From: Octopus bimaculoides
Taxonomy: Eukaryota
NCBI RefSeq assembly: GCF_001194135.2
Contig: NC_068990.1
Coordinates: 45,591,628 to 45,655,627 of the forward strand
Length of the DNA stretch: 64,000 nt
Direction of reading: 5' to 3'
The notes under the pieces are model-generated. The model had not been told where the DNA came from and ran no database searches. It worked only from the letters and a program-made list of their open reading frames with translations. Position numbers and translations under genes: made by a program. Shown piece after piece: positions 5,140 to 16,029 of the stretch (within the stretch, counting starts at the first letter, position 1; every line of letters starts with the position of its first letter).

Positions 5140-6900
5140 ATGTTTAGATATCTTAAGGTAACTTGCATAGTATCAAGTGTTGTCTCGATGTATTTTGCGC
5201 TAATGTTATCTGTTGTAGAACTCATAATATATTCCACTCATCCACCCCCAGTTACTTGCCTATGTTCAATAGTCACAGAGACATAGATATCGTTACATCT
5301 GAACATTGCAGTGATGGAGAGTTACCTGACGATGGTGATGTTTCTTATAACTTTTGTAATAAATGCCATAGGAACCGCAGGATGTATGGAAACAAGTTTA
5401 ATTATTTTAAAATAGGAAATGATCTCACGTGTTTTGATTTTCATTTATGATAATATTAGCTTAATTACATTTACAAATTTGTATTTCTATTATGATTTCA
5501 CTTATACGGATTGAAAAGCTATCAGTTTCATTATTTAGATATCCAAATAACATTGCTGTGTTGCGGAGTAATGAGTCCACCAGATTATGGATCTTACACT
5601 GATTTATTCGGTAAAGATCTGTAGTGAAACCTCTTTCTCGGGCATTCAATCACAAATGATAACGAAGCTGCTAACATCTAGCCTTCAGCTGCCTTAGATC
5701 CTTGTGTCCACTACCCTGATTGGTTCTTATTTGCGCGGCAATTGTCCCCAGTTCTGCTTCGCGCCAGGGTGCATACCGTCCAATAGTGGCCTTCTAATAA
5801 GGTCACGTGAGAGAGTGATTGCTGCCTGTTCCCTGGAGCCCCCTGTACATCTATAAATAAGCCTGTTTGAACCCGCCAGTCGTCTTCGATTTCAGACCTC
5901 TCACAGGTCTGGTCGCTGACCACATACCAGCCAGCCAGTTTTCAGCAACGACGTTATCACCACCAAAGTACTGTCTACCACAATGTCGTCGCCAGCAACC
6001 TCACCATCAGAGTACACACCAATATCAACAAATACGGTTTTATCTCGACACTGTATGAGTGGATTATTTCCATCACGAACAACAGTCAGAACTAACCTAC
6101 GAGAATATTCCGCCCAGGTAACCGGTCGTAGCATCGACGCTCAACACACTCGACATGTGACACCACAGCTCTGCTTTCCGGCCACAACTTCCTGCGTATG
6201 AACATTCTATATCTTGTGTAATTCATATACGAACTGGTATTTCTCAATCTCAGTGTTTGAGACTTGTAGTCTATGTTACAGACACTCTTTCTATATTCTG
6301 TGTTCCTCTCTCTCACACACATATTGTACACACACTATTGCTTATACGACGATCTGTTATTTCATATTGTTGTATACATACTTTTGTACACGAAGGCCTG
6401 ACTTATCTACTGTGTTATTTATATATGCCGCATGCACGCACTACAGTTTCACTATGTTAATAAACTTACTCTATTTTTATATATAACGGTTGTCTGTCCT
6501 ACTCTGTACTTTTACTGGCACTTGGCTCGTATCCCTCATGACGAGCCTTCAACAATATATATCATGTTTTTGCGTTCGACCGTGCGACGCGTTAAAAGGA
6601 GCTTTTTCCGTCTCGTCGCCATTCTCCTTTGGTTCGCACGGTCGTTCTATTACAGATCTTTACTTGAAGTCGTGTTACTCTGATCTAGTTCTTTTCTCAT
6701 ATGACTGCTCTTCTTACAAAGCTCCAAGTTTCTGCACTGGTTGTATTGAAAATCTTCTAAGAAGCCGAAATACCAACTGCTATTGTTCGAAGAGATAATT
6801 GCAGGCCTGATTTGTTTATAAATAATCATAACGTTTTGTACTTTAAAGATTATTTAGGCATATCAATGAGAATATGGCCGAAAAGGAAGATATTGTATTT
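5140..6900 (+). pseudogene. Tetraspanin pseudogene, tandem paralogue of 14294-15079
   Basis: From ATG 5140: MFRYLKVTCIVSSVVSMYFALML, aligning with MFKCFKITCIVANVISVYFALML. In-frame TAG at 5284-5286 (Tyr in the intact copy) and 5413-5415 (Trp). A deletion/frameshift precedes LLCCGV (about 5540). The solo LTR splits the KDL codons, and the frame resumes as DLYLKSCYSD...YDCSS...TGC (6655-6750). Upstream (4760-5140 vs about 13930-14294) and downstream flanks also align. Confidence 0.92.
5620..6654 (+). mobile_element. Solo LTR (1035 bp), Gypsy-type
   Basis: TGTAGTGAA...TTCTATTACA termini (TG...CA with an imperfect inverted repeat). Exact 4-bp target duplication GATC at 5616-5619 and 6655-6658; the intact paralogue has a single GATC here. 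TATA-like TATAAATA at about 5854 and AATAAA at about 6459 suggest + orientation. Confidence 0.88.
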
Positions 6901-7013
6901 CATTGATAGAAGCTGGGTCGAGAGAGTGCATTCTTAATCCATGGTATAATTGGAAATTTTCTGGCAGAAATGTGCATTGTGTGGTAGGTACCTTAAACGA
7001 AGTGCAAAGACCT
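6898..7013 (+). mobile_element. 116-bp internal LINE fragment, inverted copy of 8139-8254
   Basis: Reverse complement of 8139-8254; the 95-nt core 6919-7013 has 3 mismatches. It encodes ...FWQKCALCGRYLKRS and is absent from the equivalent position of the intact tetraspanin. Confidence 0.85.
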
Positions 7014-8054
7014 ATACATATGTACCGAAGATGAAGACAAAAGAAAAATTACTGAAAACTTTTTCAAATAAATTTATCATTTTAACTAGTAAAGGAATAC
7101 GAGAATTACTGCGAATTTCAAAATTGTTATAGTTAAACGCATTGAAGCACACAAACGTACACACGGATACGCGCGCACACACACACACACACACACACAC
7201 ACACACACACACACAGAGATACATACATAAACATATAAATGATGGCAGTCGACTCGTTAAACGAATACGAACACGACTGACTAAATAAAATGTATCACAA
7301 CATTATATGTTGTGTGAGCGACAATAGCTCTTGAATCCTGCCAGCAACTAACTGAACTTGTTGCAAATTCGATATCCATACAAATTCTGACTAAGTGGTT
7401 ATTCTGGATCATTCCAATAATTTTCTCTGTGCATGCTCATGTGCCTAGTGATTTTTACACGTCTTCTGGAAGACAGTGTATGTGAGGTTGGCCCCAGCTA
7501 GAAACCTGTAATTTGGGCTTTCTGGATGTCTTCTCTGGTGGTTCATTGGGTCTGCGCAAGACATACATATGCGGCCACAGACATCACAAGCTGTAGGATC
7601 AATGGAATTGTCTTTTTGTGCTCATCTCCTTATGCGTGACCACTCGTTTTCATTTCTCTGCAATATGCTCACTCCGTATACACATGTAACAAATACCGTC
7701 GGTACATATGTATAGGTCTGTAGTGACACCTTATAGCAGACGACTGTTATATGTTCAATGTCCGGAGTTTTATCCACGCATGCGCAGGGACTAGTTCCGG
7801 AAGGAATACAGGAAGAGTCTCATGCGCATGCGTAGAGTTCGACACCCAGCTTTGACGCCTTTTCTCACCCTCTTGTTGACTGATCTCCGTCGAGCCAAGA
7901 CGTCCAACAGAGCTCTCTCACATGTCAGCACCAGAGCTTCACAAATAACCACGGAAATCATTCAGAAGGTGTCTCAGTAACCTAGGGCGACGAGCTACCG
8001 AATTCCCTCCAAGCGTGAACTGAATTCCACTGTAAATAAATATTGTTATGTTAT

Positions 8055-8700
8055 TCAGAATCTGCGTTCCGTTGTTTCTTCTAGAAATTTAATGTACGGA
8101 AGCGGTGTACACCTAATGGTGTATAACCACTTCCCTACAGGTCTTTGCACTTCGTTTAAGGTACCTACCATACAATGCACATTTCTGCCAGAAATTTTCC
8201 AATTATACCATGGATTCAGAATGCACTCTCTCGCCTTAGATCCTATCAATGAAAGTTAGCTGCTGTATCATTTTCTAGCACATGTATACACAATTCATCA
8301 CTGAATCATGCACACGCTCACTTAACGCTGCCTCGAAGCCAAAACCCAGACCCTGCTCTTTGTACGGAAGCGACATTGCATGCTATTCGATCCACTCGAA
8401 TAGGTACCTGCTGTCTTGTATAGATCGCCTAAAATTCTCTCTCCTGGTATTTATGATTTTTCTGGCCTTGCATCACATCCACATGTAACTTCACACTTTG
8501 CATTCACAGTTTTGAACGTTGTTCAATTTTTGCATTGTGCCCATTGCTGCAATAATTCATATTATCGTTCGTTTATCTTTTGACAAACTTTCTAAGGGAA
8601 AGAATGATGTAACGAATAGCTTCCTAGATTGTAAGCTAGGATTCGAAACCGAATCTACATCTTTCTACAAGTTCTTTCCTATTGTTCTCGGCTTTCACCC
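8055..8700 (-). mobile_element. Degenerate R4/Dong-like non-LTR retrotransposon fragment
   Basis: Minus-strand translation includes MSLPYKEQGLG (compare LYLPRKEGGRG) and LENFWQKCALYGRYLKRS (compare WxxKxLHGxYL) of the post-RT region. Many stops. Confidence 0.6.
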
Positions 8701-15079: not shown

Positions 15080-15110
15080 GTCAAATGAAAAGTTATTGAA
15101 AATGTTTTCA

Positions 15111-15116
15111 AATAAA
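15111..15116 (+). promoter_or_regulatory. Candidate polyadenylation signal of the tetraspanin
   Basis: AATAAA 31 nt after the stop. The same context TTTTCAAATAAATTTATCATTTTAAC is conserved in the pseudogene (7067-7072). Confidence 0.5.
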
Positions 15117-16029
15117 TTTATCATTTTAACAGCAGTGCCCCAACATGGTTTCAATTCTCAAACTGAAGTTAGTAAAAGAATAAAAAAAATTACTGAGAAT
15201 TACGAAATTGTTATAGTCAGTCTGTACATCTAATTACATACAAACATTCTTCAGATCATCATCATCATCATCATCATAATCATTTAATGGTCATATTCCA
15301 TACTGGCTTTGGTTGAACAGTTAAACAGAATTGAACAAGTATGAAGTCTATTTCTTGTATGTCTGCTTTGGCACACTTTCTACAGTTTGATGCCTTTCCT
15401 AACTCCAACTACTTTACTGTGTGTACCATGTGCTATTTTCGGGGGACTAGCATTAGTGAGGTCATCATGCAACCAGCAAAATTTAAGATCCACCTCAACT
15501 GGTGCTAGAGTAGAGAAGCTTTATGCTATGGGATGAGGGTTTAAAGTGAGAGGGAAGGGTCCACAACAGAACAGTTTGTCTTTTCTTTTTGCTGTAGGGG
15601 AGCTACAGAATTAATTACATTACAGAAGAGAGGGTGAGAACAGTTAGGGTGGAACTAGAAAGAGATTAAAATAGTGGTGATAAAGATACCAGGTGAGTTG
15701 AAGTGAGTGGGTAATGGTTGCAAGAGTGAGAGATGATTAGATAGGGAAGAGAGGAGCAGGTGACAATTGTAGAAATTAGGTAAGGTTGATGACACGTGAA
15801 CTAGGAGAGGTAGGAGAAAGGAGGCGGTTGACAGTGCAGAAAAGTCAATGGAGTGGCAGAGTGAAGAGCAGCAGAATAGTAAAAATAATAACAGTACAGT
15901 AGACAAGAGAAGAAAGAGACAGGATTGGCAAAAGGGCAGAGGAGGAGAGACGTGGTTGGGAAGGTTGAAAGAGTGTGGAACAGACATAGGAAATGGAGGA
16001 GGGTGTATGGTGGAAAAGGAGAGATAATT

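Follow-up and report, generated by a model that had tools for sequence, protein, structure and literature searches.

Does an uninterrupted tetraspanin gene, accompanied by a decayed copy of itself, mark a young and expanding octopus family, or does it belong to an older lineage that lost its introns long ago? This question is raised by a 64,000-nucleotide stretch of the Octopus bimaculoides genome (contig NC_068990.1, forward strand, 45,591,628 to 45,655,627; hereafter the window), in which an open reading frame (ORF) at 14294-15079 encodes a tetraspanin and a same-strand relative with a broken reading frame lies upstream. Ancestral animal tetraspanins carry introns 1-6, and TSPAN10 has been reported without introns (PMC2650405). 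A preliminary description of the window had proposed a lineage-specific subfamily, retrocopy-derived or stripped of its introns, that is amplifying by tandem duplication with rapid turnover. Our analysis leads to a different picture, which we consider likely to be correct: a protein-coding, single-exon tetraspanin gene within a very divergent clade, known so far from coleoids only, that includes at least two cuttlefish paralogues and was already intronless before octopods and decapods separated, accompanied by a decayed local duplicate.

An intact single-exon tetraspanin gene

The ORF runs unbroken for 261 codons to a TAA and is the longest ORF in the window that is free of assembly gaps. Within this AT-rich (35% GC), microsatellite-laden sequence with ten assembly gaps, an ORF of 261 codons is expected by chance about 5e-4 times per window of the same composition. 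Among the remaining ORFs, a Pfam match was obtained only for one reverse-transcriptase fragment, described below. The gene and its flanks comprise the following features:

14294-15079, forward strand: intact tetraspanin coding sequence (CDS), single exon, 261 amino acids (aa) plus TAA (ORF list, Pfam, AlphaFold2, Foldseek, conserved alignment columns)
13933-14293, forward strand: 5′ flank shared with the pseudogene, probably promoter and/or 5′ untranslated region (UTR) (blastn, global alignment, Tandem Repeats Finder (TRF))
15080-15217, forward strand: 3′ flank or 3′UTR shared with the pseudogene, with AATAAA at 15111-15116 (blastn, direct reading of the sequence)

Four tests identify the product as a clear tetraspanin. 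The product scores 76.2 bits (E=3.8e-21) for Pfam family PF00335, whose cut-off is 32.1, and residues 6-238 cover positions 2-220 of the 225 in the family's hidden Markov model collinearly within the single ORF, which bears out the uninterrupted frame given in the preliminary description. A sequence search of the PDB returned Tetraspanin-7 as the top match (E=2.6e-5). The AlphaFold2 model, computed from a 47-sequence alignment, is confident (mean predicted local distance difference test score 88, predicted template modelling score 0.81) and contains four long helices, with a large loop that is also helical: the first transmembrane helix (TM1) lies within residues 2-44, TM2 within 50-83, TM3 and the first helix of the large extracellular loop in 86-134, and the last loop helix and TM4 in 204-252. 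Foldseek searches of the PDB with this model yielded tetraspanins as all 11 of the 11 best matches with probability 1.00, including Tspan15, uroplakins, CD53, PRPH2/ROM1, CD81, CD9 and the CD63 loop; the global template modelling scores reach just 0.30-0.65 because open and closed conformations differ.

The family-defining residues are in place. The large extracellular loop (approximately residues 114-215) contains exactly six cysteines in the CCG/PxSCC/C/GC arrangement of the six-cysteine scaffold (C156-C157-G158, P178-K-S-C181-C182, C192, G203-C204). The alignment of 47 sequences shows no variation at C156-C157-G158, P178, C181 and C204, and conservation of 90% or more at C182, C192 and G203. 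N13 in TM1 aligns with the consensus Asn found in 83% of the 41 non-cephalopod sequences, and D103 is a conservative change at the TM3 consensus Glu (73% of the same 41); Glu221 in TM4 was read from the sequence only. The loop carries a single N-glycosylation sequon, N-T-T at residues 138-140 (LPNTTD), and juxtamembrane cysteines occur at positions 4, 9, 81 and 236. By analogy with the family, the protein would act as a four-helix membrane scaffold whose disulphide-braced large loop binds partners laterally, with juxtamembrane cysteines that may be open to palmitoylation.

The intact gene is already annotated on GCA_001194135.2 (CM046610.1, ~45.59-45.65 Mb), as the sole gene called in 4357-25079. 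Public models differ on its start, with 240 aa from Met22 at NCBI and 261 aa in UniRef. The shorter model, which affects window positions 14294-14356, clips TM1. The 261-aa reading is the better model, since the pseudogene and cuttlefish both retain Met1 and the N-terminus MF(K/R)xxK(I/V). In the flanks, a TA-rich microsatellite (14208-14261; TRF) and the segment 15131-15169 are missing from the paralogue, and the AATAAA at 15111-15116 sits in the best-conserved non-coding block of the pair.

A divergent clade shared with cuttlefish

A word-indexed search of 5.8e9 proteins returned only the octopus protein's own entry, and an exhaustive phmmer search of 1.84e9 representatives gave 60 matches at E<=1e-3. 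Besides its own entry, the top match was a cuttlefish protein (P0003, E=4e-11, 25-30% identity), whose cluster includes Acanthosepion pharaonis CAE1280113.1. The rest were generic CD63-, CD53- and Sm23-like tetraspanins at 22-30% identity and E values of 9e-8 or worse. The names of the hits were looked up for 10 clusters. Profile searches of the 5.8e9 proteins added further cuttlefish-type sequences, which fall into paralogue A (P0003, P0064, P0094) and paralogue B (P0095, P0096, P0098), found together in the same sequencing runs; neither these searches nor phmmer across its representatives found a second octopus member.

The octopus and cuttlefish proteins are approximately 27% identical, and they share an N-terminus, MF(K/R)xxKI, and a loop signature, CCGVxxxxDYxFYxxxFGxDxYPxSCCY...Y.C...GCY. 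In a neighbour-joining tree they form a clade with 87/100 bootstrap support, and the nearest tetraspanins outside it, from other phyla or classes, are about 25% identical. The divergence of the protein noted in the preliminary description is thus borne out by its nearest non-self match, at 25-30% identity. Its proposal of a lineage-specific subfamily holds in part: the phylogeny it had called for groups the octopus protein with cuttlefish in this clade, but the clade is not restricted to octopus, its intronless state is not a recent octopus event, and no hallmarks of retrocopying survive at the octopus copies.

Octopus and cuttlefish members share the clade, the N-terminus, the loop signature and an unbroken CDS, and differ in several respects. 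The cuttlefish proteins have a first extracellular loop that is 14 residues longer, and an acidic C-terminal tail. Cuttlefish have two live paralogues, separated by an old divergence (synonymous divergence, dS, 1.4) and with no tandem partner within 10-22 kb, whereas the octopus has one live and one dead copy.

Several observations on the cuttlefish sequences stand apart from this comparison. In one decapodiform, paralogue B (L014:73-747; L015-L018; runs ERR12945498, ERR12921336/37/39 and ERR12945500) has an in-frame TGA immediately ahead of TM4, at a position occupied by Arg in its relatives; beyond it the frame is open as far as the normal stop. A recent nonsense mutation or an incipient pseudogene could explain this. 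The 5′ flanks of both paralogues (L002:80-100 and 268-290; L006:~190-210) share the motif ATTGTGAC(A/G)TCATCA, one copy of which holds a perfect palindrome resembling a cyclic AMP response element, TGACGTCA. The motif may be a promoter element; no counterpart was noticed on reading the octopus flank, for which no pattern search was made. At the 3′ ends of the paralogue B contigs L006-L011, a templated A-rich tract, AAAAAAAGAAAAAAAAAAAAAGAAAA, occurs ~120-150 nt past the stop with no AATAAA just upstream, and could be either the poly(A) remnant of an old retrocopy or low-complexity sequence at an assembly break. The cuttlefish contigs end in repeats and low-complexity runs, which suggests that they are genomic DNA; a literature search on the sequencing runs that carry them found nothing.

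Age and cause of the missing introns

In A. pharaonis, the homologue is likewise an unbroken ORF, of 282 codons (L012, CAHIKZ030002045.1:10001-10846), and tblastn aligns all 282 of 282 residues in one high-scoring segment pair. It is present as a single copy in a 32.7-kb locus, and the whole length of a 1.33-kb contig from a related species aligns collinearly with that locus. The public protein model for this locus, CAE1280113.1 (468 aa; gene span 12.7 kb, L012:10001-22746), agrees with the true ORF over 240 residues before splicing into low-complexity sequence rich in Phe, Ser and Leu. The unbroken ORF runs on to 282 aa and is identical to P0064, which was called independently on a contig from a Logan run assembly; the splice in CAE1280113.1 is probably spurious.

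None of the ancestral introns 1-6 is present, since the whole CDS is one ORF in both octopus and cuttlefish. The unbroken CDS common to octopus and A. pharaonis implies that the introns were lost once, before the octopod-decapod divergence. This split dates back some 250-300 million years.

The gene lacks the introns of its parent family, as a retrogene would, and it most likely descends from a CD63-like ancestor with six cysteines, whose introns would have disappeared in a single ancient retroposition or by complete intron loss. Retroposition would explain this most simply. The poly(A) remnant and target-site duplications that would mark a retrocopy were not found at the ends of the unit shared by the two octopus copies; their loss is expected after so ancient an event, so their absence is uninformative.

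A decayed duplicate upstream

The paralogue starts with an ATG at 5140, 9,154 bp upstream of the intact ATG and on the same strand, and is absent from public gene calls for this stretch. Its parts are:

4758-5139, forward strand: 5′ flank, homologous to 13933-14293 (blastn, alignment, TRF)
5140-5620, forward strand: 5′ coding part, codons 1 to ~175 (tblastn, alignment, codon table)
5621-6653, no strand assigned: insertion 1, ~1,033 bp (direct duplication of AGATCT at 5615-5620 and 6654-6659)
6654-6877, forward strand: 3′ coding part, codons ~175-248 (tblastn, alignment)
6898-7016, no strand assigned: insertion 2, a short interspersed repeat fragment that replaces the last ~13 codons and the stop codon
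7034-7133, forward strand: 3′UTR remnant; the AATAAA is conserved (7067-7072), and a (CA)20 tract comes after it (7176-7215)

This copy is dead: it carries four stops as well as six or more indels or insertions. Its 5′ part has in-frame TAG codons at 5284-5286 (the position of Tyr48) and 5413-5415 (Trp91), two +3 insertions that keep the frame, and two deletions that shift it, one of 11 nt (codons 121-124) and one of 41 nt (codons 139-152). The 3′ part has lost family-defining residues (Cys182 to Tyr, Pro178 to Leu), contains a 1-nt deletion (codon 212) and a 1-nt insertion, and aligns with two more stops, TAA near 6819 (Gln230) and TAG near 6856 (Lys242). The preliminary description of a same-strand decayed relative ~9 kb upstream, sharing the flank, the CDS and the AATAAA region, was confirmed by blastn and alignment; the nonsense codons, the deletion and the two insertions it reported are all present, together with lesions it had not listed, and the peptide differences it quoted between the copies are correct.

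The AGATCT repeat flanking insertion 1 is a true target-site duplication, because the intact site at 14815-14820 has a single copy. The ends of the insertion are compatible with TG...CA and short, imperfect terminal inverted repeats; a solo-LTR-like element (LTR, long terminal repeat) is a reasonable guess from these ends. The insertion contains TATAAATA near 5853 and AATAAA near 6461, and has no second copy within the window. On the reverse strand, 8254-8136 matches the core of insertion 2 (6898-7016) at 92% identity; the repeat is ~120 bp long (three-way alignment). As for the possibility that the inserted repeats are non-coding RNAs or tRNA-derived short interspersed elements, Rfam and ARAGORN found nothing in the window.

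The pseudogene flank contains a (GT)n(GA)n tract at ~4975-5032. Other long, perfect or near-perfect microsatellites occur at 10848-10929, (TTC)27; 13111-13226, (CA)58; and 9172-9359, (ACCT)n/(CATA)n. A decayed reverse-transcriptase fragment, 11229-11666 on the forward strand (Pfam RVT_1, E=3.5e-13), is split across frames, with neighbouring ORFs at 11092-12247, and is a retrotransposon remnant between the two tetraspanin copies.

Origin of the pair

The two copies are homologous in six blastn pieces (intact copy first):

13992-14133 with 4834-4974, 75% identity
14255-14638 with 5100-5490, 78% identity
14756-14820 with 5556-5620
14815-15038 with 6654-6877, 75% identity
15078-15130 with 7034-7086, 88.7% identity, spanning AATAAA
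15170-15217 with 7087-7133, 83% identity

In a global alignment, the upstream homology reaches ~13933 in the intact copy and ~4758 in the pseudogene, that is ~345-360 bp, broken by unrelated microsatellites. The 5′ flanks are 70.6% identical over 235 aligned bases and 84% identical in the final 32 bases before the ATG. The detectable homology spans ~1.2 kb: ~350 bp upstream, the CDS and ~140 bp downstream. Across the 64 kb, tblastn found two copies only. The window holds adjacent same-strand paralogues that share CDS and flanks, one of them pseudogenised. The assembly gap at 3853-4757 cuts the pseudogene flank and conceals the left boundary of the duplicated unit; this and the other N-gaps, ten in all, together with the microsatellites, limit the resolution of the duplication boundaries. 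A larger tandem block was sought by comparing 1-13990 with 13991-40000, and blastn gave nothing outside the gene unit. No A-tract follows 15217 or 7133, and there is no target-site duplication at the homology edges. One 16-nt direct repeat (88%; 14165 and 15325) was considered as a candidate and set aside, its left copy being inside the shared flank; it is probably a chance match.

A local duplication of a gene unit of at least ~1.2 kb would account for the second same-strand copy 9 kb upstream. The upstream copy would then have decayed through nonsense mutations, frameshifts and two transposon insertions, while the downstream copy would have been kept open by selection. Could the upstream copy instead have arisen through RNA, with the mRNA of the intronless gene itself reverse-transcribed, and not through unequal crossing-over? 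The homology is limited to ~1.2 kb with nothing beyond it, a size that fits the ~1.26-1.33 kb cuttlefish contigs (310-330 nt upstream and ~150 nt downstream of the CDS), and a reverse-transcriptase fragment lies between the copies. However, neither copy has an A-tract where the homology ends, no target-site duplication flanks either edge, and the same strand and 9-kb spacing are usual for local DNA duplication. The unit may also be longer than it appears, with its left edge in an assembly gap, and at ~30% divergence neutral flanks subject to indels and transposon turnover would mostly escape blastn. We regard an RNA-mediated copy as improbable and favour local DNA duplication followed by erosion of the neutral flanks, on the strength of the shared strand, the 9-kb distance, the missing A-tract and target-site duplication, and the gap that hides the left edge.

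Selection on the two copies

Between the intact copy and the pseudogene, the Nei-Gojobori method gives dS 0.34, non-synonymous divergence (dN) 0.31 and a dN/dS ratio (omega) of 0.92 over all codons. Restricting the estimate to codons 1-248 lowers omega to 0.83 (bootstrap 95% interval 0.55-1.30), a range that fits one neutral and one moderately constrained copy as well as two nearly neutral copies. By region, omega is 0.66 in the large loop and 1.3 in the transmembrane helices. The cuttlefish orthologue pairs have omega values of 0.23-0.32 (transmembrane 0.10-0.21, loop 0.24-0.52), and the paralogue B pair 0.51, which is relaxed purifying rather than diversifying selection. In the loop-versus-transmembrane comparison that the preliminary description had proposed as a check, the octopus loop does not exceed the membrane helices, and the cuttlefish loop stays below 1. 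Positive selection was considered and dropped, since none of the pairwise Nei-Gojobori estimates gives a supported omega above 1.

Such values raise the question of whether the intact ORF, too, might be a non-functional or dying relic, spared a disabling mutation so far and annotated only on the basis of an ORF prediction. Against the pseudogene, dN is close to dS; non-synonymous divergence (0.29-0.31) is near that of the flanks (~29% mismatch); an exact look-up of the 261-aa product in run assemblies found no transcript; and the public models dispute the start codon (240 versus 261 aa). However, a neutral simulation at K=0.17, half the pairwise dS, left the ORF stop-free in 0.2% of trials before indels are counted, while its sister has accumulated at least ten disabling lesions. 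At sites invariant in five cuttlefish homologues, the ancestral residue has been lost 15 times in the pseudogene, including P178, C182 and Y183, and 6 times in the intact copy, which keeps all family-defining residues and has a confident, complete predicted fold. The simulation, the lesions of the sister copy and the 15-to-6 asymmetry argue that the intact copy has been kept by selection. A dying relic seems to us quite unlikely; most likely, the intact gene is functional yet quickly evolving.

Copy number and the question of amplification

The tandem pair might also be a glimpse of a young subfamily of retrocopy origin, one still being amplified by tandem duplication with rapid birth and death of copies and driven by diversifying selection on the loop as in immune or chemosensory receptors. 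A live/dead tandem pair does exist, pairwise omega is high (~0.83-0.92), octopus and cuttlefish proteins are just ~27% identical, and a premature TGA interrupts paralogue B in one decapodiform. Molluscan nicotinic acetylcholine receptor (nAChR) genes offer a documented case of retroposition with subsequent tandem duplication (PMC6896357), and the gap left of the pseudogene could conceal more sequence. Against this, the intronless CDS is common to cuttlefish and so reflects an ancient event, and the octopus copies are themselves old (dS 0.34). tblastn adds nothing to the two copies in the window, the 32.7 kb of cuttlefish genome has a single copy, and the protein databases hold one octopus member. 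Omega in the loop remains below 1 in cuttlefish (0.24-0.52), and in octopus it is not higher (0.66) than in the transmembrane helices (1.3).

Some turnover does occur, as seen in the octopus pseudogene and the premature TGA of decapodiform paralogue B. Taken together, there are two copies in 64 kb of octopus, one in a 32.7-kb cuttlefish locus, and two old cuttlefish paralogues, one of which has a premature stop in another species. An actively amplifying young family is hard to reconcile with these ages and numbers, and we consider it a poor prospect; 'amplifying with rapid turnover', as the preliminary description put it, finds no support in one live and one dead octopus copy, one cuttlefish copy and cuttlefish omega values of 0.23-0.51.

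Discussion

We return to the reading of an ancient, intronless coleoid clade with a decayed local duplicate in octopus. Several points weigh against it. The ends of the shared unit lack the hallmarks of a retrocopy (a poly(A) remnant and target-site duplications), and as no multi-exon parent was identified either, the data do not separate retroposition from stepwise intron loss. The homology between the octopus copies is confined to a transcript-sized unit, which would suit duplication through DNA or RNA alike. The high pairwise omega indicates that the live copy is fast-evolving or weakly constrained, and no run-assembly contig matched its product exactly. Finally, the octopus copy count rests on the 64-kb window and the protein databases.

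Comparison with known systems places the gene more clearly. After its own entry and cuttlefish, its best matches belong to the CD63-like group (insect 'CD63 antigen', scallop '23 kDa integral membrane protein-like' and Varroa 'CD53-like'), a group defined in its intron/exon structure by ancestral phase-0 introns 1-6 at conserved positions (Garcia-Espana et al. 2009, PMC2650405). The octopus protein shares with this group the four transmembrane helices, the CCG and PxSCC motifs, two further loop cysteines, the TM1 Asn and an acidic TM3 residue; it differs in having 22-30% identity at E values of 9e-8 or worse, and an intronless CDS in place of introns 1-6. The cuttlefish members, unlike the CD63-like group, lack the TM1 Asn and the TM3 Glu. 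Vertebrate TSPAN10 (oculospanin) is also reported to be intronless and provides a published precedent (PMC2650405). It was not among the phmmer matches whose names were checked (10 clusters), and no specific sequence relationship was detected; its introns were presumably lost independently of those in the cephalopod clade. The molluscan nAChR genes, in which intronless copies arose by retroposition and were then duplicated in tandem (PMC6896357), share the proposed route of intron loss followed by local duplication in a multi-exon membrane-protein family. Their arrays reach tens to hundreds of copies, whereas the octopus window has two, one of them dead.

The annotated gene, the precedent of an intronless tetraspanin, and retroposition with tandem duplication in molluscs are already known. 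The coleoid intronless clade, the tandem pseudogene and three annotation problems (the truncated O. bimaculoides start, the probably spurious A. pharaonis splice and the unannotated pseudogene) appear to be undescribed, as far as full-text literature searches show. It is conceivable, at rather long odds, that this coleoid-specific, anciently retroposed lineage evolves unusually fast, with local copies repeatedly gained and lost, through a lineage-specific role in cell-surface recognition (for example gamete, immune or epithelial). If so, its part would resemble that of CD9 or CD81 in the fertilisation of vertebrates.

The feature is real and fairly ordinary, and it opens no major question. Next to vertebrate TSPAN10, it supplies another, independent example of an animal tetraspanin entirely without introns, the second so far, represented by an old, cephalopod-restricted and fast-diverging clade rather than by a young octopus retrocopy. 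As such, it offers a small but clean data point for the evolution of tetraspanin introns and a candidate lineage-specific membrane scaffold for cephalopod biology.

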